Below are positions 3,014 to 58,741 of a DNA stretch of 64,000 bases, in pieces. Below the pieces are notes generated by a model. The model made no database searches, was not told the origin of the DNA, and saw nothing but the letters and a program-made list of their open reading frames with translations. Within the stretch, counting starts at the first letter, position 1; every line of letters begins with the position of its first letter. Source of the DNA: Octopus sinensis (lineage: Eukaryota); assembly GCF_006345805.1 (NCBI RefSeq), contig NC_043001.1:43648001-43712000 (forward strand). The letters are read 5' to 3'. The position numbers were made by a program, and so were the translations under genes.

Positions 3014-3158
3014 CTGGCTTCTTTCAGTTTCCGTCTACCAAATCCTCTCAAAGCTTTGGTCAGAAGATACTTACCCAAGGTGCCATACAGTGGGACTGAA
3101 CCCGGAACCATGTGGTTCGTAAGCAAGCTACTTACCACACAGCCACTCCTACGCCTAC
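2757..3158 (-). mobile_element. tRNA-derived SINE, family B (ggttcagtcccactg...ccttgggcaag core, internal TA/CA microsatellite)
   Basis: Matches plus-strand copies at 32625, 33250 and 48120; 3' end gactgaaacaagtaaaagagta. Confidence 0.8.
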
Positions 3159-41702: not shown

Positions 41703-41846
41703 CTTTACACATTCCAAATTCTTCATCCCGGCCATTAAGACAATCAATGTGACTGTCACATGCTTTCCAGTAAGGTAAACACCTGTCACTATCAGGTTCA
41801 CATAAGAACTCATAGTCAGCACATGACTTTGGAGGCCTGTTAAATC
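41703..41846 (-). CDS. SORL1: SORL1 exon, LDL-A repeat 10
   Basis: ttcag|GA TTT...AAA G|gttagt; FNRPPKSCADYEFLCEPDSDRCLPYWKACDSHIDCLNGRDEEFGMCK. Confidence 0.92.
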
Positions 41847-42957
41847 CTGAAAATCAAAACAAGAAATGTAGTAGTTTGGAGTTCATAGCTTAGGAGGACA
41901 AAGCTATTCAATAGACTGATTTTTCTTCAACATATTTAATAATACATTTTTATCTTAGTAAAATGAAATACATTTGATTTATTTTTTCTACTTTTTAAAC
42001 AAATTTTCACTTAACAACTAAGCGGCTTTGATATACAGAAATTATGAGAGAAAATAGAAGGAATCAACTCTGTATTTGTCCTTATAGTATTTATCTACAT
42101 GAACAATCTAGATGAAATTGTTCAAATAATAATTATAAAGGCAACTGTTGTTATATTACTAACATCACTGAAGGTGTCCTTAAATATAATCCATTCCAAC
42201 TCTGGCTTATGTTGGCATAAAAAAATAGTTCAAGTCTCTCTCTAAAACTAATCTTCTACCCCTTTTGTTACCATATTTCTACTGAAATACATTAACTTTG
42301 TTTCAATTAATTTTGAAAATAATGAAAAATTTAGTAAAATAATTTTGTCAGTACTAATTTTGTGTTTGGAACATAGATTAATAAGAAATCTTGATAGAAG
42401 GTTTTAATTTAGATTACTTTAAAGCAGGAAGTTTGAATAAGATCCAAGTGGCCTTGGGTAGTTTGGTATCAAAAGCATTAAAAAGATGTTAACTTCTCCG
42501 GGGGTGGGGGAGAGAAAAATGGAACTGTCAGCCACAACAAAATATTGTTGAATGTTGTGAATTTTAAGTTTCTGTTACTGTAACTAAACATGGCTTCTGC
42601 TTTCCAGAAATGTTCTCATTTTAACATATTTAGACAGGTCACAAATGGCTGACTCTTAAATAATAAAGAATGTTCCTATTCTTATTTCATTTCATTATCT
42701 TCCCCAAATCTGCCAATTTCTTTCTCAATATTCCAAGCAAATAATGATTACTTGTAATGTTGCTTCATATTAGGATATATTTTCCTTGATACCTGTGAAG
42801 CTAATCATCTTGTAACTTTTTCCCTTGCATTAAATCTAGAAGGACAGACAGACAAGACCATATCAAAATCTAGCTGTTCTCTATTAATATGACAATTTCT
42901 AGAAGTTCAGACAAATCAGTTGCTTCCCTCAAAATAGCCATGACGTAAAGTACTCAC

Positions 42958-43227
42958 CGTTACTCGAGTGGTTGTAGTAACAATCCCTTTCATCTGAATG
43001 ATCAATGCATTCATTGATACCATTGCAAATAGAGCTTTGTGGAATGCAGCCAGGGGATTGTACGCAGTGAAACATGCCTTCTCCACATTTTTCAATGGTT
43101 GGACAATTTTCTTCATCAGAATTATCATTGCAGTCGTTCTCACCATCACAAGTCCATGACATGTGAATACACATACCATTTGTACAGCGGAATGAAAATC
43201 CTTCACATTTATGTTCATTGCCTGATG
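42958..43227 (-). CDS. SORL1: SORL1 exon, LDL-A repeats 8 and 9
   Basis: actag|CA TCA...AAC G|gtgagt; [89 protein letters not shown]; alternative in-frame acceptor 6 nt downstream (exon start 43221). Confidence 0.93.
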
Positions 43228-44064
43228 CTAGTTAAAAAAATACATAAAAAGAACAAAAAACAGAAAGTGATATTGAAACTTTAACCAATTGTTAAAGAAA
43301 ATTTTAAAATGTTAAAATTTTAAAAATCAGATAAAAAATTATTTTCCAAATATATTTTCCCATTGTGATTTTTATACTTGTTTTTCTCTCATCCGCACCA
43401 ATTATCCCAAAATATTAATAGATACTTCCTATTTTATTTTAGTGCTTAAGGATTGGTGCAATTAATTTCATAGACGTCAAACTTCAACTCATGAAGTCAC
43501 AAATCTATATAATTGACTCACTGACCTATCCCAAGGCTTTAATAAAAATAAAAGCTTGATTTGGCTATTGTTTTTCAACCATAGACGACAGAATAATTAT
43601 TTCATTAAACAATGGAATCTATTTCTAAATATAATATATTTGAACTGCACACACCTATGTATTTGCTATACTTCCCTAATAGCTTACAGGAATGGTTACA
43701 AAAGGAAAGGATAGTGTAATAGGGTATGGAGGGGTTGCAGAATAAGGAAACATACATGAATTATGAAATAAGGAAAGGAACAAAGAGAGAAATTGTTTGG
43801 CTGTCTATATTCTTTCCCACCCACCCATCAAAAAAAAAAAAAAATCCAGTCTTGTATAGGATAAGCAGTTTGTATAGATTAACAATACATGACTTAAAAC
43901 AGATAGCAAAGACAAGCAAGATGGTAGCATTTTGGCTTGTTCCACTCATGTTGTCTGCTTTCCCTCGTCTGGAGAAGGTAAAATACATCTCCATAACACA
44001 CAAATATTAATTTAATCAATTGATCAACTTATGACAAAATTAGCAGTACATTTGGCATAGTAGC

Positions 44065-44628
44065 ACCATAGTCAACTGTTACAAAGATAAAAGTGATGCT
44101 TTAGATAGAGATAATTACAGGGGTATCAAACTGCTGGATCAGGTGATAAAGGTCACAGAGAAGGTCATAGCCCAACTAATTAGGGAGAGAGTCTGCTTAG
44201 ATGAGATGCAGTTCAGTTTTGCGCCAGGTAGAAGCACCACTGATGCTATATTCTTGGTATAGCAACTGTAGGAGAAATACCAAGCCAAAGTTAAACCCCT
44301 ATACTTGGCTTTTGTAGACTTGGAGAAAGCCTTTGATAGGGTCCCCCGATCACCTTGTCTGGTGGGTGATGCGGAAACTGGGGATTGACAAGTGGTTAAT
44401 AAGAGCTGTACAGGCCTTGTACAGGGATGCTGTAAGTAAGGTAAGGGTCGGCAATGAGTATAGTGAGAAATTCCGGGTAGAAGTAGGGGTTCACCAAGGA
44501 TCAGACCTCAGCCCCCTCTTATTCATCATAGTCCTCCAGGTATTAACAGAGGAATTCAAGACAGGCTGCCCCTGGGAGCTACTCTATGCTGATGACCTTG
44601 CTCACATAGCAGAATCACTACTAGAACT
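44065..44628 (+). mobile_element. RTE-type LINE internal RT fragment
   Basis: NYRGIKLLDQVIKV...QF.FAPGRSTTDAIF...LAFVDLEKAFDRVP...GVHQGSDLSPLLFIIV...ELLYADDLA. Confidence 0.9.
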
Positions 44629-44827
44629 TGTTAATTTTTACCTTCTGTATTATTAAATCATCATCATTACCATTTAACATCCTTTTCCCCTGTAATTTTG
44701 CTATTGTTTATAATGTATATCTTTTCTTTATACACATATACAATATCAACCCATATCATCACAATCAGTGAAAATGGACAACCCACTCTCGTATTAGTTT
44801 GGTATAATAAGGGTTCTCTTTACTTAC

Positions 44828-44962
44828 GACAATATTCTTCATCACTTCGATCAGAGCAGTCTACATGGCCATCACATTGCATCCTTGTTAGGATGCACTT
44901 TCTATCAGCAGTGCACTGAAATTCATCTGCTTTACAGCTTGGTGGTGGAGGAGAAAGGAAAC
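44828..44962 (-). CDS. SORL1: SORL1 exon, LDL-A repeat 7
   Basis: tcaag|GT TTC...TGT C|gtaagt; (C)FLSPPPPSCKADEFQCTADRKCILTRMQCDGHVDCSDRSDEEYC. Confidence 0.93.
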
Positions 44963-46270: not shown

Positions 46271-46429
46271 AGTTTTCTTCATCTGAGTTATCATCACAGT
46301 CATTGATGCCATCACAACGTTCACTGGCAAAAATACAAAAGCCATTGTCACACTGGAATTCTACACCATTACATCTGGGCAAGGAACTTGACTTAGTTGT
46401 AGTTGGAACAGGTTGTGTAGTTTTGTAAA
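46271..46429 (-). CDS. SORL1: SORL1 exon, Ser/Thr linker plus LDL-A repeat 6
   Basis: tatag|TT TAC...AAC T|gtaagt; [52 protein letters not shown]; the final Cys codon is split (T|GT) with the next exon. Confidence 0.93.
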
Positions 46430-47780: not shown

Positions 47781-47903
47781 CATCTGTACAGTTAGCTTCA
47801 TCAGAGTAATCACGGCAATCGTCATCAAAATCACATGTCCAATTCAAAAGAATACAACGGCCATTCTTACATGTGAATTCATTAGGAGAACATGATGGGT
47901 AAG
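47781..47903 (-). CDS. SORL1: SORL1 exon, LDL-A repeat 5 (paralog of repeat 3)
   Basis: tctag|CT TAC...GAT G|gtaagc; [40 protein letters not shown]. Confidence 0.94.
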
Positions 47904-48119
47904 CTAGAAGAAGGAAATGAAAATAGTGCATGAAACTTTAGATAGTGAAAAGGATTAGTATATTCTTGGTCTGATATCATAATGAGAAAATAGCATAACA
48001 ATATTCACTTTTAAATCAAACTGTATAATTATAATACTGTGTGTATGCATGCATACTTGTATACCTGTATGGTAGTGAGATACAATTTATTTTACACAAA
48101 TCATTTTAAAAAATTAACA

Positions 48120-48430
48120 TTGTAATGGCTGTGTGGTTTAGAAGCTTGCTTTGCAACCATGTGGTTTTGGGTTCAGTTCCACCACATGACACCTTACGTG
48201 TGCATGTGTGTGAGAGATACCCCCCTCCACATACACCACCACCACTTGACGACTGGTGTTGGTTTGTTTATCTCCTCATACCACAGCAGTTAGGCAAAAG
48301 AGACTTATAGAATAAGTACCAGACTTAAAACTCAGTCCTGGAGTTGATTTGTTTGAGCAGACCCTTCTGGGTGGTGCCCCAACAGGTAGGTTCACAGTCC
48401 AATGATTGACTCAAGTAAAAGATAAAAGGT
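48120..48430 (+). mobile_element. Family-B SINE
   Basis: atggctgtgtggtttagaagcttgc...ggttcagttccacc...gactcaagtaaaagataaaag. Confidence 0.75.
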
Positions 48431-48511
48431 AAACAAAAAGAATATGAAAAACATTTTGAAGAAAAGGAATCTGTTATGAATATTTGAGGAAGATGAGACA
48501 GAAATACTCAC

Positions 48512-48628
48512 TGCAATTTTTCTCATCAGAACCATCACTGCAGTCATTTTCATGATCACAGATCCAATGTCTTGGAATACACTGCATGTTAGGGCAATGG
48601 AAATTACCTTCAGAACACTGGTTAAATT
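48512..48628 (-). CDS. SORL1: SORL1 exon, LDL-A repeat 4 (paralog of repeat 2)
   Basis: tacag|AA TTT...TGC A|gtgagt; [38 protein letters not shown]. Confidence 0.94.
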
Positions 48629-49110
48629 CTGTAGAGAAATAAAACAAACATAAAGCAGCTGCTAATAATTTGGTAAAAAGAATATGGCTTTGATGAAATT
48701 TATAGTCTTATGCATTTAAAAAAATGTCATTAGAAAAGACGGGCAGAAATAGAGACCTGCCTGCATCAAATATTGACATATTTATATCACATTAAAAGCA
48801 ATTAGATGGGTTATAAACATGTAGTGTGCATTACTTTTTTATCAAGTTCGTATTAAGATGATTTAGAAGTAGAGACTTTTAGACTACCATAAAACCCATG
48901 TAATTTACGCACTTTTTTGAAAAAATGAAAATAAACTTTAGATTGTTTCTAGAACTTTTTTAGAAATTAATTTTCTTGAAAAATGATGTACAAATCTAAA
49001 CATTTGTACAGGAAGTTGACTCATTTAATGTCAGAATACATTTTTACAGAAAAAATATAATGAAGCTGACTTTTATTTATGCTGGACGGTATAATGCTTA
49101 CTTTTTCTGT

Positions 49111-49196
49111 ATAAATTTACTAAAACCATTAACTTTTTGAAGTTTGATGTTCATAAATTTACTAAAACCATTAACTTTTTGAAGTTTGATGTTCAT
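49111..49196. repeat. Perfect 42-bp tandem duplication
   Basis: ataaatttactaaaaccattaactttttgaagtttgatgttc x2. Confidence 0.95.
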
Positions 49197-50243
49197 GCTG
49201 GTAATCATGGTCCAGGCCAAATTTTACATAGCTTGGAGTTTCTACCTATTGCAATGGAGCCCAGCAATTTCCTTAAATAGTTTTTCCCCATTTAAGAAGT
49301 TTAGCTTACATTTGCCTCCAGGAAGCTATTACTTGCTTTCTCTGCATTAGGACAATGAAATTCATTGCCACCACCTCTCTTGTTCAATAAACACTGAGTT
49401 AAACTTGCAGAGCTGTTTATTTTCTCCTTTCGATTTTTAATGTTTATTTTAGTGGGTTACCAAACTATCAGTTTGGTCTTCCAGCTAAATTGGTAATGAC
49501 AAATTTTAAAGTTTGCTTGACATTTTATAAGTGCGAAAGGGATTAAAATTTCGATATTCCATATCAAAGGTTCCAACAAGAATAGGCAGAAAATCAGAGC
49601 TTGAGACAAGAGGACACTTTCGACCAACCAGAATTCTGTTTACATAATCAGTTTGATCAGTCACCTTCCTCTGTCGGTTGAGTAAAGTGTCATCCAAGTT
49701 GATGTTTATTGGTAATTAAACTTATTTTGCAACACTGGTGCGTATTACACAGCTGGGTGTCCCTACATTCTTGATATTCCTACTTTTAATTTAACATACT
49801 TTGAGATCTTTTCTAGTTCTTTGTTTGCAATGTTTTTTCTGAAAGAATTGTAGTTTCTATTATGAAGCATTCTCTTCTTTCCAAGTCACATACAATAATA
49901 CCTGGTAAGCTAGTAGAATTGTTAGCACGCTGAGCAAAATGCTAAGAGGCATTTCATCTACCTTTATGGTTGGTCTGAGTTCAAATTCTGCCATGGTCGA
50001 CTTTAATTTTTTTTGTTTCAGGGTCAATAAAAATAAGCACCAGTTGAGAAACAGGGTTGATGTAATCAACTTACCCACTTCCTCAAACTTGCTGACCTTG
50101 TGCTAAAATTTGTAGTCAATAATATCTGGTCTACAGTACTAGATTATTCTGTTTGGATTTTTAAAAACCCATAGAAATCTTACTTCATAAGTAATTTAGC
50201 AAACAGATAAAGTCAGGAAAAAAATTATTCCAAAACAACTTAC

Positions 50244-50366
50244 CATCTTCACAGTTAGCTTCATCAGAATAATCATGGCAGTCATCATCAAAGTCACACG
50301 TCCAATTCAAAGGAATGCAGCGGCCATTATTGCAAGTGAATTCAGCAGAAGAACAAGGTGGATAGG
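50244..50366 (-). CDS. SORL1: SORL1 exon, LDL-A repeat 3
   Basis: tccag|CC TAT...GAT G|gtaagt; [40 protein letters not shown]. Confidence 0.95.
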
Positions 50367-51651
50367 CTGGAAAATGGAAGGGGAAACAGACCAACATTAT
50401 TAGAGATGAGTTATTTTTAATGTCAAAGAAGAAAAAAATATCAAGAAAATTAACAGACTAGAAGGAAGTTAACATTACATAAGTTGGTACATGTAATCAT
50501 GAATTAGCTAAAATGTCAGAAAAGAAAAGTGAAAACAGCTCTTAAATGATACATTATCAGTATCTAGGCAAATTGATTCAATTATGTCTTCACTAAGAGT
50601 AGAGTTTCATTTCAGATAGATTACAATAATTCATCTTACTAAATTCATTTATTACCTTAATTGAAAAGAAAGATTTTCTTTACTAGTTTTAATTATTACA
50701 TGATGAAATAAAGCTTGATATCTATAGGTGAGAAAAGCAGCACATAGGGGACAACAAATATAACTAATGTTTTAAATCAACAATTTGAAAGAAATCACTT
50801 GAAATGTTTGAAAGCAGGAGTGTCAAACAAATGAGCAGTGAACTGGATCTGGCTCATGATAATGTTTAGTCTAACCTCACCTCCAAGTTCAATTTTATAG
50901 TAAAGTATTAAATTATTCTTTAACTTTTAAAATATTCCATAAAATATATATATTGTTAGCATACATTCAGTGTTGGAATCCAAATGAGAGTTGAGTCAAA
51001 TTAGTGCATCTTAGAGAATCTTATGTCTATACATTGCAAATGGAAGTGAAAGTTTCTTTTTCAAATTTAGGTATGAGCTCATTTGAATAGATTCAACTGA
51101 TACATGGATGATGTTGAAAGGGCTTGAAAATGAAATAGTGCAAGCTTTCTACCAAAAAAAAAACTGCCTGCATTCATTTAAGCAATTTCTATCTCTGTTC
51201 TCACACTAAAGACTCTTATTTAATAGGATTGTATGTATACCATATGAATGAGCTTTTCTCATACATCGCTGCAAACAACATTGCTTACACCTCATTGTTT
51301 CTTTATTGTTAATAAAGTTGTTATGATTATATTGACCACTTTATCCATTTATTTTGGTTTAGTTATCAATAGGGAATTTATGAATAATTGTCCCTATCTG
51401 GTGCTTTAATCTGACCCGCAGAAATAAGTGTTTTAGAGCTTCATTTGAAAAATCAAAAATTAATCCTATCAATATTTTTAATGAGATTAACTTCATCCTT
51501 TTAGTGTGGAAATCAGATATATCCACTCAAAATTTTATTACCCTTAACAGTAGAAAGCAGTTTTATATACCAATCTATCTTCTATTGAGGAATGATATTG
51601 TATTTAAAACTATTTTTTGTTGAGATGTATCAAGTTTATTGAGGCAACATC

Positions 51652-52020
51652 ATCAACATTATCATTTAACATCCGTTTTCCAAGCTGGCATGGGTTGGAC
51701 AGTTTGATAGGTAAGCCGGGGAGCTGTACCAGGTTCTGATCTGATTTGGCAAGGTTTCTTTGGCTGGATGCTCTTCCTAATGCCAGCCATTCCAAGATTG
51801 TAGTGGGTGTCTTTTTACATGCCACTGGCATGGGTGCCATTGACTTGACACTGGCAATGACCACAACTACAGTCTCACCTGGCTTGACAGGTCTACACAA
51901 GCATGGTATATTGCCAAAGATCTTGGTCACCTGTCACTGCCTTCGTGAGGCCCAACACTCGAATAGTGCTTTTTATATGCTACCAGCACATGTGCCAGTC
52001 AAACAGCACTGGGGAGCATG
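51652..52020 (-). mobile_element. RTE-type LINE 3' tail fragment
   Basis: atcatttaacatccgttttccaagctggcatgggttggac...ctggatgctcttcctaatgcc. Confidence 0.75.
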
Positions 52021-52319
52021 ACTTGCAAAAAATACCAATACTATTTTTTGGTAGATATTTAATACCATTACTGGAATAACCATGAAATTTAATTTTGCAG
52101 CTAAAGAGTGAAACACCAAAAGAACCGTTATAATTTTTTGGACTATTAATTCCATCATTAGATATATATGATCTTCATACTATATATTTACATATATAGT
52201 ATTGAATTAGATTCAAACTAGAAACCTTTAATTCTACACTAAAGGGGTAATAACATTCTTATCCACAACATAATAGGTTCTTAGTTTTAATCAAATCTGG
52301 TGTTACAGCCCCAGCTCAT

Positions 52320-52660
52320 TCAAAAGTATCTTGGATCGTAGGGCAACATGCTGTGCTTGGGGAGACCTATTGAGTCAAGTACATCAAAATCAAAATGAAA
52401 ATCAAATGGAAATTGTAGTTGTGATCCCCGTGCCAGTGGCATGTAAAAAAGCGCTGCCTTGACTGGCTTCCATGCCAGTGGCACATAAAAAGCACCCACT
52501 ACACTCACAGAGTGGTTGGCATTAGGAAGGGCATCCAGCTGTAGAAACACTGCCAGATCAGACTGGAGCCTGGTGCAGCCTCCTGGGTTCCCAGACCCCA
52601 GCCGAACTGCCCAACCCATGCTATCATTGAAAACAGATGTTAAACGATAATGATGATATA
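52320..52660 (+). mobile_element. RTE-type LINE 3' fragment
   Basis: gagacctattgagtcaagt...aaaagcacccactacactc...ttaggaagggcatccagctgtagaaac...gatgttaaacgataatgatg. Confidence 0.8.
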
Positions 52661-53927
52661 TGTATATCTATCTATCTATATATATATATCATCATCATCA
52701 TTGTTTAAAGCGGACGTTAAACGGATGATGATATATATATATGTGTGTGTGTGTGCATATATATATATAGGAACTAGATACTTAATGATAAGTGGGTTAA
52801 TAGCCTAAAAAAAATTATAATCTTAGCAATTTATCTCAAATATTTAGACATCTAATTTCTATTAGTTATGATTATAATAGAATAAAATGTATTAAGAATC
52901 ATGTCAATACTAACCATATCTTTAACTAATTGTTATTATTTGGCTGTCAAGCAATTTATCAGACAGTGTGATTTCAAACACCTACCCGGTTTAATATCTT
53001 TGGTTTACAACTAAATATTGAAGGATTGAGAAAATATTAACTTTTATATGTTACGAATGGAAGAACACTCCTGCTAGCAGCAAATAATTTTGCTTCAGTT
53101 GAAGCATTTCTATTCCTACATAATTATGCATAAATTTCATTATTACTGTTCTCATTATTTTAAAAATTATTATTATTATTATAGTTCAAATTCCATTGAG
53201 GTTGACTTTGCCTTTCATCCTTTCGGGGTTGATAAATTAAGTACCAGTGAAATACTGGGGTTGATGTAATTAACTCATCACCTCCCCAAAAATGGTTGCC
53301 CTTGTGGCAAAACTTGAAATTATTATTATTATTATTATAATAAAGGGCAGGGACTGGTAGAATCGTTAGAGCGTTAGAGCCGTGCTTTTGCAGTATTTAG
53401 TTTTAGTCATATAAATTCTGAGTTTGAATTCCAGTTGAGAAAATAAACTACCAAACAAATACTTGGGTTGATATAATCAACTGCTTTCTTTCCTTCAAAA
53501 CTGCTGGCTATATGACTAAATCATTCAACTTCACTTTTCATCCCTTAGCAGTCAATAAAATAGTGCTTGTTGAGCACTGGTGTTGATGTAATTGACTGGC
53601 TTCAACCCCTAAAGTTCAGGCCTTCTGCCTCTATAGTAGAACAGATTATTACTATTATTTCAAGTTGATTTCCAAAATTTTTCTAATACAAATTTATCCA
53701 ACATTTTTGTCCTTGTTATTATTCCCATGCCACAATGGAATGTTAATGCAAAAATAAGAGTTGTAAATAATGCATACTGTATGTGTTTCTATTTTTTTTA
53801 TGCTAATCAATTCAGAAAAAATAACAACAAACAAATAAAATAGTAACAAAAATATTTAAATATCAAAAAATAAAATAAAAAATAAAATCGCAGGAATATT
53901 TAAGGAAGATGAGACAGAAATACTCAC

Positions 53928-54044
53928 TGCAATTTTTCTCATCAGAGCCATCACTGCAGTCATTTTCATGGTTACAGAGCCAGTGGTGTGGGATGCATTG
54001 CATGTTAGGACAACGGAAGTTACCTTCAGAACATGGATGATATT
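53928..54044 (-). CDS. SORL1: SORL1 exon, LDL-A repeat 2
   Basis: tgcag|AA TAT...TGC A|gtgagt; [38 protein letters not shown]. Confidence 0.94.
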
Positions 54045-55559
54045 CTGCAGGGAAACAAAACTAACATAGAGCAGCTGATAGGAGCTGGTATGATGTAAAA
54101 TCTCAGTGAAATGAGAATGTGATAGCTACACTGGGTGATAACAAACCATTCAGTTGCAGTCAAGTGCGATTAATTATTTCTGAGGAGCTTTGCAGTTCAT
54201 GCAATCTAAATACGCTGATCAGAAACAGGAGGGGAAAAAAAAAACAAAGTACAAAACAGAAAAGAAAAAGGAAAGGTTTGTTTGTATAAGGGAACTGAAT
54301 GTTCATTATGAAATTTAAAAAAAGTCTAAGAAACAAAGAAATATAATTTTACTTACATTATGGAACATATCCATTTTAATTAGATATTATCTACAAGCTT
54401 TCTGTTCCATATATGATTACAAAGTAAATGATTATAACCTATTCCCCTCTTCTTTGATTGGTTAGAAGAGATCAATAATAAAAACTATCATCACCTAATA
54501 TCATCTCCAGTTTATTTGCATCATGAAATCTCTTTTTTTTTTTGTGCTAGTGTCATTTAAGAGACTAACTGGATCTATCTTTTGTAATAGTAATATCTAT
54601 GATTAGAGCTACAACAAAGCTGACTTATTCAGTTTCTTTACAGTCTATTTTTTTTAATTAAAATTTTTTTTTTTTGAGTATTCTCAATAAGCAGTAGTAT
54701 TTGTCTTGCAAATGGAATACACAAATTATTAGAATAAGTTGGAAACCTTATCTAATATTAATCACAGAAACTGTGAGATAGAAGTAGCAAATATTTTCAT
54801 TCTGAGACAAAAAAAAAATTAATGTGTAACAGTAATAAGGTGCACCAAGATGTTATGTTATTTCATTTAATGTATGATAATTACCATCTTAATATTTTTA
54901 CAACATTCACTAAAATATTTTCTTTTGCAAATCCAAGACAGATTTTAATTGATTTTGAGATAAATGTAATACAGTTGAAAAAAAATTGTCAACTATTAGT
55001 CAAATTGAAACTATATCTTAGATACATTACAACATAAACCTCAAACAAAAACTTAAATGTATTTAGAGTATTTTAAATACACCATATGTGAAAGAAACAA
55101 AAACTTAGCTTTTAAGTGAACACCCAGCAATTAAATCATACTAACATATTTACAAGAAATGGCAATGTAGATGTCTGAGAGGAATGTGCTTTTAGGTTTG
55201 GAATTCTTAATTTAAAGTTTCAGGATGTAAAATGAGTAATGGCATAATACTAGAGGTTGAATCATTTGATTATATCCACATCACTTATAAAACTGGTCTC
55301 ATGCTAAAGAAAAAAAGATAATGTGTAATATCAGAAAAATAATAAATTGCTTTCCTGAAGATTCTATAGTTTGCAGGACAAAAGAAAGCTAGAAATGATT
55401 GAATGGAGTGTGAGTTCTGGTTCAGAAAACTTTAAACAAGGCAAGGAAGTTACATGGATATCTTCCAAGATTCCAGTATTAACTTGCTTGTCTTTTCATG
55501 AGTCCTGAAGCCAATAAAATGTTAATCTGAAGTATGGTAAGCTTTTTTTGTTTTTAATT

Positions 55560-56409: not shown

Positions 56410-56520
56410 CACAGTTAAGTTCATCACTGCCATCAACACAATCAGGATCGTGGTCACATTTCACAGCAGCTGCGACACATTGGCTGTTGTGACACTGAAA
56501 CTGATGCGGTTCGCAAGTAT
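56410..56520 (-). CDS. SORL1: SORL1 exon, LDL-A repeat 1
   Basis: gtcag|AT ACT TGC...TGT G|gttagt; [36 protein letters not shown]. Confidence 0.94.
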
Positions 56521-57781: not shown

Positions 57782-58221
57782 CTAAAAACAATTAATTAAA
57801 TGATAATGTACAAAGAATCTGACATGAAAGCAAATTCTGGAATCTTTATAATTTCAGAAACATTACTCTATTTACAAGGAGATGGGGATAAAAATGTGTT
57901 TGTGAAGTGAACTTCTTAAACCCACAACCATGTCTGTATATATATATATATGTATCAAATGAAATAAAATGTGCATATATATATATACATACACATGCAT
58001 ATGTATACACATATATTGTGTACACACCTACATATACATACCCACATATGGATATACTTATATATACCTACACATACACATATCTATACACGTATGTGTA
58101 CACCCCCATACACTCATACAAAAAATACATAAAGGTAAATGTATATACACATGCACGTATATACATATACGTACACATGCACATATGTGTGAATGCATAT
58201 GTATGTATGTGTGTATGTACC

Positions 58222-58731
58222 TATGTGTGCACATGTGTGTGTGTGTATAATCTTAATCCTGAGCAACGCCGGGTATCTCTACTAGTGAATTAATATAGAT
58301 TTATGAATACAACCATGAAATTGTGAGTAATTCTATTTGTGTGCTTGATTGAACAAGCAGTTAAAAAACAATAAGAATAGAAATGACAACAATATGTGTG
58401 CACATGTGTGTGTGTATAATCTTAATCCCAAGCAATGCCGGGTATCTTTACTAGTGAATTAATATAGATTTATGAATACAACCATGAAATTGTGAGTAAT
58501 TCTATTTGTGTGCTTGATTGAACAAGCAGTTAAAAAACAAAAAGAATAGAAATGACAACACTATGTGTGCACGTGTGTGTGTATAATCTTAATCCCGAGC
58601 AACGCCGGGTATCTCTACTAGTGAATTAATATAGATTTATGAATACAACCATGAAGTTGTGAGTAATTCTACTTGTGTGCTTGATTGAACAAGCAGTTGA
58701 AAAACAAAAAGAATAGAAATGACAACACTAT
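58222..58731. repeat. Three tandem ~170-bp units (171, 169 and 167 bp) containing a Helentron-type terminus
   Basis: Units start at 58222, 58393 and 58562; length differs by the (TG)n tract; each holds ttaatcc(c/t)gagcaacgccgggtatctctactagt. Confidence 0.93.
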
Positions 58732-58741
58732 GGTGACATAC

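Follow-up and report, generated by a model that had tools for sequence, protein, structure and literature searches.

The LDL-A cluster is the main ligand-binding region of SorLA. In the related case of human LDLR, LDL-A exons undergo Alu-mediated rearrangement, with intragenic duplications and deletions arising by unequal recombination between interspersed repeats. Tandem domain arrays such as zinc-finger, nebulin and spectrin-type repeats show birth-and-death turnover together with concerted evolution. The LDL-A cluster of human SorLA contains the APP binding site (PMC5073117). In human SORL1 the boundaries of the CR domains had been set by genomic exons.

Here, a stretch of 64,000 nt from Octopus sinensis was analysed (the whole of it is referred to as the window), in which a first-pass annotation had proposed the tandem duplication of a pair of LDL-A exons within SORL1. 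The reading we favour, with a probability of about 0.85, is that the exons of repeats 2 and 3 (A and B) were copied long ago in the octopod lineage, that ancestral repeats 4 and 5 were replaced by the copies (A' and B'), and that conversion between copies followed later.

The window SORL1 gene

The window holds the 3′ two-thirds of a SORL1 (SorLA) orthologue on the minus strand. The 10CC match, Pfam domains, tail and named sortilin-related receptor relatives all agree with this identity, which had been assigned from the sequence at first reading. Only the last 10CC exon of Vps10p falls inside the window (63999-63764, minus strand), and it matches the human SorLA Vps10p chains 7vt0/3wsy with E = 7e-17, compared with 5e-4 for sortilin. 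The Vps10p/10CC portion is of the SorLA type, and the complete Vps10p domain occurs in the closest relative, 'sortilin-related receptor-like [Argonauta hians]' (GAB1604830.1, 80.6% identity over 1441 aa). Other named SORL1 or sortilin-related receptor matches came from Patella (36.7%), Lingula (35.1%), Pecten (34.8%) and Branchiostoma (34.5%). Pfam matches in the window gene were Ldl_recept_b, Ldl_recept_a (9 stretches) and fn3, with fn3_SORL1 scoring 24.9 bits, slightly below the 27-bit cutoff. The domain order is a YWTD propeller and EGF, the LDL-A cluster, an FN3 cassette, a TM and a tail ending in ...DSPMITGFSDDEPLVIA. The conserved acidic C-terminus of this tail (...GEDEDSPMITGFSDDEPLVIA) is identical in the SORL1 of Argonauta and of L001, a single transcript contig with a frameshift outside the LDL-A region, whose placement among the cephalopods is based on distances.

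PDB sequence searches for the SorLA CR cluster and FN3 cassette returned LRP/LDLR family or generic FN3 matches only, and in these searches no SorLA chain outside the Vps10p domain was matched. A protein homology search with the A-B-A'-B' peptide and the FN3-tail region gave few animal matches and missed the Argonauta protein, although the latter is in the collection searched.

The LDL-A cluster of the window comprises 10 repeats (R1 to R10), with R8 and R9 encoded by one exon in the window and Argonauta alike; no further LDL-A exons of window SORL1 were found beyond the EGF-to-FN3 stretch. The exons are as follows.

56410..56520, minus strand: exon of LDL-A repeat 1, upstream neighbour of A; orthologue of L001 R1
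53928..54044, minus strand: exon A, LDL-A repeat 2; 117 nt, phase 1-1; orthologue of L001 R2 (71% core identity)
50244..50366, minus strand: exon B, LDL-A repeat 3; 123 nt, phase 1-1; 80% core identity to L001 R3
48512..48628, minus strand: exon A', copy of A, in the ancestral repeat 4 slot; 117 nt, phase 1-1
47781..47903, minus strand: exon B', copy of B, in the ancestral repeat 5 slot; 123 nt, phase 1-1
46271..46429, minus strand: exon of LDL-A repeat 6, downstream neighbour of B'; 74% core identity to L001 R6
41703..44962, minus strand: remaining LDL-A exons (R7 44962-44828; R8 and R9 in one exon 43227-42958; R10 41846-41703)

Copy relation of the four exons

The difference counts first reported were reproduced exactly: exons A and A' differ at 19 of 117 nt (83.8% identity), and B and B' at 21 of 123 nt (82.9% identity). 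As had also been stated, all four exons are of phase 1-1, with two codon-completing bases at the start and one extra base at the end. Each has an AG acceptor and a GT donor, and no stop interrupts the frame that leads from R1 to R6 by way of A, B, A' and B'. Standard Cys spacing, the hydrophobic Phe and Ile, and a D/D/D/E calcium cage with DxSDE identify all four as LDL-A exons. The motifs had been described as intact, which holds for the six Cys and the D-x-S-D-E motif in four out of four exons, but not for the first calcium-cage residue of repeat A, where Asn replaces Asp (CNHENDC) in both the window and Argonauta. Exon B has the 'CDFDDDCHD' R3 type conserved from amphioxus to molluscs. Many of the differences between copies are synonymous, as was first noticed; Nei-Gojobori counting assigns 21.5 differences to 39.7 synonymous sites and 17.5 to 194.3 non-synonymous sites, and pS and pN between A-B and A'-B' are 0.54 and 0.09.

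The copies are mutually closer than any other repeats. Protein identity of the Cys1-Cys6 core is 89% for A/A' and 86% for B/B', and does not exceed 66% for any other pair among the ten repeats; A/A' and B/B' were the sole LDL-A exon pairs detected by self-blastn of 40-60 kb. Bootstrap values in the repeat tree were 99% for A with A', 93% for A and A' with L001 R2, and 88% for B and B' with L001 R3. Moreover, the two pairs agree in order, orientation, lengths, phases and intron position (117, 123, 117 and 123 nt in both octopods), and the copies are missing from outgroups. These findings uphold the proposal of a two-exon block duplication, with A'-B' being a DNA-level copy of A-B that retained its intron position and phases.

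When the A-B and A'-B' introns were compared, no homologous duplicated introns or identifiable junctions were found. Intron similarity of A and A' is confined to the 36 nt before the exon and the 34 nt after it, and the other intron matches are SINE copies. Loss of intron homology is expected at a dS of about 1 or more, and this result was therefore not counted against a DNA-level origin.

Replacement of ancestral repeats 4 and 5

Ten LDL-A repeats were also counted in L001, Argonauta, Solemya, Patella, Lingula, amphioxus and three further orthologues. The first-pass annotation had taken the 11 repeats of vertebrate SORL1 as its reference, with an addition implied. This does not stand, as the relevant baseline is 10 and the octopod gene still has 10, with ancestral repeats 4 and 5 gone. 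The octopod event is a replacement without net gain, in which A'-B' fills the slots of repeats 4 and 5.

In all non-octopod ten-repeat sequences compared (the cephalopod L001, bivalve, gastropod, brachiopod and amphioxus), repeats 4 and 5 are distinct types. One of the ancestral pair has a long Cys2-Cys3 loop and the other is of the form 'W/Y-x-F ... CI[FY]..W', and the pair is still found in L001, bivalves, gastropod and brachiopod; L001 R4 clusters with R4 of other molluscs. Core identities for R2-R4/R3-R5 reach 89/86% (window) and 77/77% (Argonauta) in the octopods, whereas L001, Solemya and Patella show 46/54%, 35/49% and 43/44%, respectively. A tblastn search with ancestral R4 and R5 found no relic exon in the window or the Argonauta SORL1 locus. 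Otherwise the SorLA cluster is conserved by position, with the R3, R4, R6, R9 and R10 types recognisable from amphioxus to molluscs. For deep orthology of single repeats, human CR1-11 sequences were taken from PMC12667055; identities of 40-60% were not discriminating, with the exception of L001 R4 and human CR4 (57%).

Window R8 was also considered as a relocated ancestral R5, given its 63% identity to L001 R5. This was rejected, since for Argonauta R8 the identity to L001 R5 falls to 54%. Octopod R8 carries 'SWVCDG.DDC', the R8 signature of other phyla, and its likeness to L001 R5 was treated as likeness to a general consensus.

Age and similarity of the copies

The Argonauta hians genomic locus, annotated SORL1, has A-B-A'-B' with the same exon order, lengths and phases. 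The arrangement is lacking in the other cephalopod (L001), bivalves, gastropod, brachiopod, amphioxus and vertebrates, in keeping with the lineage-specific copy first suggested. Nucleotide identity to the Argonauta counterpart is 92.3% for exon A and 80.5% for exon B'. Site patterns favour orthology of copies over within-species grouping, by 12:1 for A (12/14 informative sites) and by 6:3 for B, where the topology is poorly supported (protein bootstrap of 58% for B/B'). At the sequence level, the orthologue of exon A' is Argonauta A'. Since each copy, A or A', groups with its counterpart in the other of the two octopod species sampled, the copying is placed before the split between Argonauta and the window species and after the separation from the L001 lineage. 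L001 is equidistant from both octopods (58%), and gene-wide pS between the window and Argonauta is 0.61. A divergence of about 16% between the copies had been given; the value is correct, but it understates their age and is not a clean clock, because A/A' is partly re-homogenised. The Argonauta paralogue pairs are 72-76% identical.

Three features around A and A' bear on this re-homogenisation.

53894..53970, minus strand: gene-conversion tract at A (the final 43 nt of exon A and first 34 nt of the intron)
48478..48554, minus strand: gene-conversion tract at A', counterpart of the tract at A
54045..54080, minus strand: intron flank upstream of A, sharing 83% identity with the A' flank 48629-48664

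Differences between A and A' are clustered (permutation P about 0.001), with 2 in the 77 nt of the tract versus 18 within the exon's first 74 nt, and the local alignment of the tract has z = 17. Over intron positions +1 to +34, identity is 97% for A/A' in the window, compared with 41% for A/A' in Argonauta and 44% between species. Upstream flanks align with z = 10.6 for the paralogues, and with 3.3 and 1.1 for the orthologous flanks. Likeness of paralogues within the species is thus far above that of orthologues and the tract ends are sharp, as in gene conversion. Judged on these alignments, the 77-nt A/A' tract indicates a later gene conversion in the window lineage, and such conversion explains the flank similarity better than homology of duplicated introns does.

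With two octopod species available, conversion on the window side and accelerated change of A' on the Argonauta side are partly confounded within the exon; the intron evidence is unaffected. RNA secondary structure was rejected as the cause of the conserved exon-intron tract, as the folds at A and A' are unremarkable (z = -1.2 and -0.3).

Route of the replacement

Introns are SINE-rich in the window species and in Argonauta, and 12 copies of a SINE-like element were found in the window, two of which lie within the A-B intron.

51613..52657, unstranded: two inverted copies of the SINE-like dispersed element in the A-B intron, which explain intron-to-intron similarities

Unequal recombination between such introns was probably the first step, giving a 12-repeat intermediate from which a deletion would then have removed repeats 4-5. 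Later, in the window lineage, a short conversion re-homogenised the 3′ end of A/A' and the first 34 nt of the next intron, with the consequence that the copies appear younger than they are. Residual intron homology, either between A-B and A'-B' or between species, was considered and rejected, each match being a copy of the one SINE-like element. Two steps and one are not distinguishable from the present sequence, in which neutral intron similarity has decayed and SINE copies may postdate the event.

It is possible, though doubtful, that exons 4-5 were overwritten with 2-3 in one step, be it ectopic gene conversion or repair by template switching, without a 12-repeat stage. Conversion is demonstrably active at the SORL1 locus, but where it depends on homology it requires similar donor and acceptor sequences, and ancestral R2/R4 and R3/R5 have only about 46-54% protein identity. 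The repeat number staying at exactly 10 and the like divergence of the two pairs (83.8% and 82.9% identity) fit a single event; however, its tract must cover two exons and an intron, and no junction signature survives. Copying followed by deletion is retained as the likelier route.

Selection and use of the copies

Both copies were proposed to have been kept, and indeed both are retained under purifying selection, with dN/dS about 0.1 for all copies. Between paralogues dN is 0.096 and dS about 0.96; between window and Argonauta orthologues dN is 0.02-0.12, against the gene-wide pS of 0.61. A relative-rate test with L001 as outgroup gave no significant asymmetry in the evolution of the copies. 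Copy-specific residues are common to both octopod species; the fixed changes in A'/B' include a lost 'CIP' proline and an exchange of His for Arg/Lys beside the calcium site. Purifying selection, taken together with copy-specific residues fixed in both octopods, makes it likely that all four exons are working modules. Most likely, A, B, A' and B' all encode predicted working calcium-binding ligand modules of one protein. It would be a further and rather unlikely step that the constant ten modules reflect selection on cluster length or geometry and that A'/B' gained a ligand specificity of their own; in a stronger form of this reading, the two pairs would serve as alternative cassettes.

From the symmetric phases it had been concluded that the pairs could be skipped or used alternatively. 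The phases are symmetric in A, B, A' and B', but every LDL-A exon of the gene is of phase 1-1, and the property is hence unspecific. Transcripts with either A-B or A'-B' (or with one pair skipped), yielding isoforms that differ in their ligand-binding modules, are very improbable. The label 'isoform X2' on the Argonauta record implies that further products are predicted, yet the sole annotated Argonauta product seen includes all four exons. Equal lengths in multiples of three, the symmetric phases and the retention of copy-specific residues between species would suit cassettes of this kind; however, long introns separate the pairs and are unconserved between species except for SINE copies, and RNA structure at the conserved tract is not unusual (z = -1.2, -0.3).

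The order A-B-A'-B' resembles a plain tandem duplication, but an octopod cluster two repeats larger than that of its ancestor is extremely unlikely, given that the window count of 10 equals that of nine non-octopod sequences (L001, Solemya, Patella, Lingula and amphioxus among them) and that the ancestral R4 and R5 types are absent. The chance of an assembly artefact or collapsed haplotypes, considered unlikely from the start, is negligible, as the copies are 16-17% diverged with different introns, there are no N runs, and the identical arrangement recurs in the independent chromosome-level assembly of another genus (Argonauta hians).

Comparison with known systems

The octopod SORL1 case is real, yet it is fairly ordinary intragenic repeat turnover. 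It offers a natural experiment on whether module number or the identity of each module is required in the cluster, and on how conversion obscures the time at which internal duplicates arose. For annotation and dating it serves as a warning: a within-species divergence of 16% would greatly underestimate an event that precedes the Argonauta split.

The gene resembles human and other vertebrate SORL1 (SorLA, LR11) in its order of Vps10p/10CC, YWTD propeller, EGF, LDL-A cluster, FN3 cassette, TM and conserved tail. However, vertebrate SORL1 has 11 repeats, whereas octopods and the other non-vertebrates examined have 10, and octopod positions 4-5 are copies of 2-3. As in the Alu rearrangements of LDLR, the event was an in-frame tandem copying of several phase 1-1 LDL-A exons, and the octopod introns are rich in SINE-like elements, although a repeat-mediated mechanism is only inferred for the octopod event. 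Unlike those rearrangements, the octopod case is fixed and ancient, has been kept by purifying selection in two genera or more, and went together with the loss of the two neighbouring modules. The turnover of tandem domain arrays is similar in that one octopod repeat type expanded at the cost of another while array length stayed constant, with conversion between copies. The difference is that the SorLA cluster is otherwise conserved by position, and turnover within it is the exception.

Gene model and identity of the locus

A gene model was assembled by joining open segments on the basis of splice signals and continuous phase. Its parts, in which A and B denote the exons of LDL-A repeats 2 and 3 (R2, R3) and A' and B' their copies in the repeat 4 and 5 slots, are as follows.

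Edge of the window, minus strand, 10CC exon
After the 10CC exon, minus strand, YWTD and EGF exons
Minus strand, ten LDL-A repeats in nine exons, all phase 1-1, namely:
56520-56410, minus strand, R1 exon
54044-53928, minus strand, exon A, 117 nt
50366-50244, minus strand, exon B, 123 nt
48628-48512, minus strand, exon A', 117 nt
47903-47781, minus strand, exon B', 123 nt
46429-46271, minus strand, R6 exon
44962-44828, minus strand, R7 exon
43227-42958, minus strand, R8+R9 exon
41846-41703, minus strand, R10 exon
Minus strand, FN3 exons, transmembrane exon and last exon, with the end ...GEDEDSPMITGFSDDEPLVIA*

The 10CC exon matched human SorLA Vps10p structures at E = 7e-17, compared with 5e-4 for sortilin. 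Pfam matches in the model were Ldl_recept_a, Ldl_recept_b and fn3, with fn3_SORL1 falling slightly under the cutoff. Across 1441 residues the model shares 80.6% identity with GAB1604830.1, annotated as 'sortilin-related receptor-like isoform X2 [Argonauta hians]'. On the strength of these three lines of similarity the gene is assigned to SORL1. The window has a G+C content of 34.5%. R8 and R9 share a single 270-nt exon (42958-43227), the remaining repeats having one exon each, and Argonauta R8-R9 (about 73200-73465 in the genomic locus L003) are also uninterrupted by an intron. A tandem repeat (169-nt unit, 3.1 copies, 94% matches) occupies 58221-58739, within an intron that separates YWTD exons.

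Relatives compared

The FN3-tail region, used as query, returned one Logan fragment, P0014. Its parent, L001, is a 4335-nt transcript contig from run SRR27666075 that spans the YWTD region to the tail. Used in turn for a full HMMER scan, P0014 yielded full-length SORL1 orthologues, those named being from Argonauta hians, Solemya velum, Patella caerulea, Tegillarca granosa, Pecten maximus, Lingula anatina, Tubulanus polymorphus and Branchiostoma belcheri; L003 was used for Argonauta comparisons at the genomic level. L001 was 58% identical to the window model and to Argonauta alike but only 37-43% identical to other molluscs, which points to a cephalopod outside the window-Argonauta pair, probably a decapodiform. 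The reading frame of L001 shifts at nt 3071-3108 (two overlapping gene calls). This is probably an assembly error, since L002, a contig from a sister run, has an unbroken 660-aa C-terminus.

Duplicated exons in the LDL-A cluster

Exons A and A' differ at 19 positions over their equal length of 117 nt, and B and B' at 21 over 123 nt, exactly as counted in the first-pass annotation. Its assignment of phase 1-1 to all four is borne out by the splice signals (a pyrimidine tract and AG ahead of each exon, GTRAG behind), with two codon-completing bases at the start and one spare base at the end, and by the spliced R1-A-B-A'-B'-R6, which is open throughout without a stop. A/A' and B/B' were the only LDL-A exon pairs detected by self-blastn (40-60 kb). 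Protein identity over the Cys1-Cys6 core was 89% and 86% respectively, compared with at most 66% for all other pairs among the ten repeats. The B-A' intron also holds a perfect tandem duplication at 49111-49196 (42-nt unit, 2.0 copies, 100% identical), which is evidently very recent.

Replacement of repeats 4 and 5

L001, too, carries ten LDL-A repeats, of which R2 and R3 are orthologous to A and B, whereas R4 (37 residues) and R5 (35 residues) are different modules. Solemya, Patella, Lingula and amphioxus, together with four further orthologues, share this ten-repeat layout, in which R4 has a long loop and R5 is distinct.

Core identity of R2-R4 and of R3-R5 in each species or sequence
Window: 89%, 86%
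Argonauta: 77%, 77%
L001: 46%, 54%
Solemya: 35%, 49%
Patella: 43%, 44%
P0039 (vertebrate-type orthologue): 49%, 49%

In repeat trees the octopod A copies grouped with L001 R2 (93% bootstrap) and the B copies with L001 R3 (88%), while R4 of L001 clustered with R4 of other molluscs. Searching the window and the Argonauta locus by tblastn with ancestral R4 and R5, the types kept outside octopods, recovered the ten known repeats only and no decayed exon. Because outgroups have ten repeats with distinct R4 and R5, and given the trees and the lack of a relic, the octopod cluster is read as having lost ancestral repeats 4 and 5, with a copy of 2 and 3 filling their place. The tandem duplication of an exon pair proposed in the first-pass annotation is real, lineage-specific and retained, but it is a count-preserving replacement common to at least two octopod genera. 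Vertebrate SORL1 has eleven LDL-A repeats, and using that number as the yardstick had concealed the replacement, ten being the count in the non-vertebrates compared.

R8 of the window (43103-43210) is 63% identical to L001 R5 but only 54% to L001 R8, its counterpart by position, which bears an unusual 'ESEDE' motif. Argonauta R8 lacks this excess likeness (54% to L001 R5). A second rearrangement was considered and rejected, the likeness of window R8 probably being a general-consensus resemblance.

Age of the copy

All four exons are present in Argonauta, with lengths and phases as in the window.

L003 67577-67693, exon A
L003 68055-68177, exon B
L003 68844-68960, exon A'
L003 69593-69715, exon B'

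Argonauta introns here are much shorter. Of the five window introns lying between the R1 and R6 exons, four exceed their Argonauta counterparts in length by 1.3- to 10-fold (A-B, 3561 against 361 nt), A'-B' being about equal (608 in the window, 632 nt in Argonauta). This agrees with the report that the Octopus-type genome is about twice as large (PMC12682272).

Nucleotide identity of the exons
Upstream copy, window vs Argonauta: A 92.3%, B 81.3%
Downstream copy, window vs Argonauta: A' 82.9%, B' 80.5%
Paralogues inside window: A/A' 83.8%, B/B' 82.9%
Paralogues inside Argonauta: A/A' 71.8%, B/B' 75.6%

For A, 12 parsimony-informative sites supported ((A_w,A_g),(A'_w,A'_g)) against 1 (w, window; g, Argonauta), and for B 6 sites against 3 supported the same species-crossing grouping. 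These sites indicate that the copying predates the split between the two species. The split itself is deep, as the gene-wide pS is 0.61 (dS about 1.3; dN 0.10). Fossil calibrations quoted in PMC12682272 give minimum ages of 29 Ma for the Argonauta-Octopus split, 162 Ma for Vampyromorpha-Octopoda and 240 Ma for Decapodiformes-Octopodiformes. If L001 is decapodiform, the event would lie after the oldest of these splits and before the youngest.

Gene conversion at A/A'

Differences between A and A' in the window are clustered (permutation test, P about 0.001), with 18 in exon positions 1-74 and 2 in the next 77 nt (exon 75-117 plus intron +1 to +34), past which the likeness ends abruptly; B/B' differences are uniform. 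The intron stretch +1 to +34 is 97% identical between window paralogues, compared with 41% between Argonauta paralogues and 44% between orthologues, the latter two values ruling out a conserved element. Its local alignment gave z = 17 for the window paralogues and z of at most 4.4 for each other pair. The upstream 36 nt are also alike (83%; z = 10.6 vs 3.3 and 1.1). All 12 orthology-supporting sites of A lie within exon positions 4-74. RNA folding of the tract revealed nothing unusual. From the clustered differences and the intron likeness confined to window paralogues, we conclude that at least one short conversion event took place in the window lineage after the Argonauta split. Conversion also accounts for a window paralogue pS (0.54; 0.83 in Argonauta) that does not exceed the orthologue value (0.61). 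The divergence of ~16% noted at first pass is consequently a poor guide to age, the event being much older and blurred by conversion.

Selection and differentiation of the copies

Between paralogues dN/dS is about 0.10. Orthologue dN is 0.021 for A, 0.099 for A', 0.110 for B and 0.121 for B', the value for the whole gene being 0.10, and a relative-rate test found no significant asymmetry between copies. Copy-specific residues fixed in both octopods are Y/F, H/N, R/H and N/D in A/A' and, in B/B', a change of the 'CIP' Pro to Leu/Met and, following Cys5, of His to Arg/Lys. The first calcium-cage position is Asn in repeat A of both octopods (CNHEND, window 53959-53976; same Asn in L003 exon A) and Asp in A', in L001 R2 and in nearly all other repeats; despite this Asn, A shows the strongest conservation among the four exons. 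The low dN/dS and the fixed copy-specific residues suggest that all four modules are most likely functional parts of one receptor, and they may bind different ligands. Symmetric phases had been taken to allow alternative use of the exon pairs. The phases are as described, but generic, since every LDL-A exon of the gene is phase 1-1. The sole octopod product at hand (Argonauta) includes all four exons, and alternative use is unlikely.

Proposed mechanism of the exchange

We favour a route in which unequal recombination would have produced a tandem duplication of A-B, R4-R5 then being deleted. The main alternative, one-step ectopic replacement of R4-R5, is judged less probable, since ancestral R2/R4 and R3/R5 share too little similarity for homology-driven conversion. 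A cDNA-mediated copy is ruled out because A'-B' keeps an intron of matching position and phase.

No neutral similarity is left between the introns; each intron-intron match within or between species is a copy of one SINE-like element.

525-52632, 12 sites in the window, SINE-like dispersed element, core CAACCCATGCCAGCATGGAAA
51613-51933 and 52464-52657, inverted pair of copies in the A-B intron
45216, 39017, 36333 and 34946, further example sites

The 12 occurrences compare with 0 expected by chance, and open segments of the element read ...WLALGRASS... or ...LSNPCQHGK.MLNDDDD. Argonauta introns flanking LDL-A exons also hold copies.

No paper connecting SORL1 to octopus or cephalopods emerged from the literature search. 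The octopod cluster illustrates a familiar class of event, namely exon-block duplication within a gene and repeat turnover.
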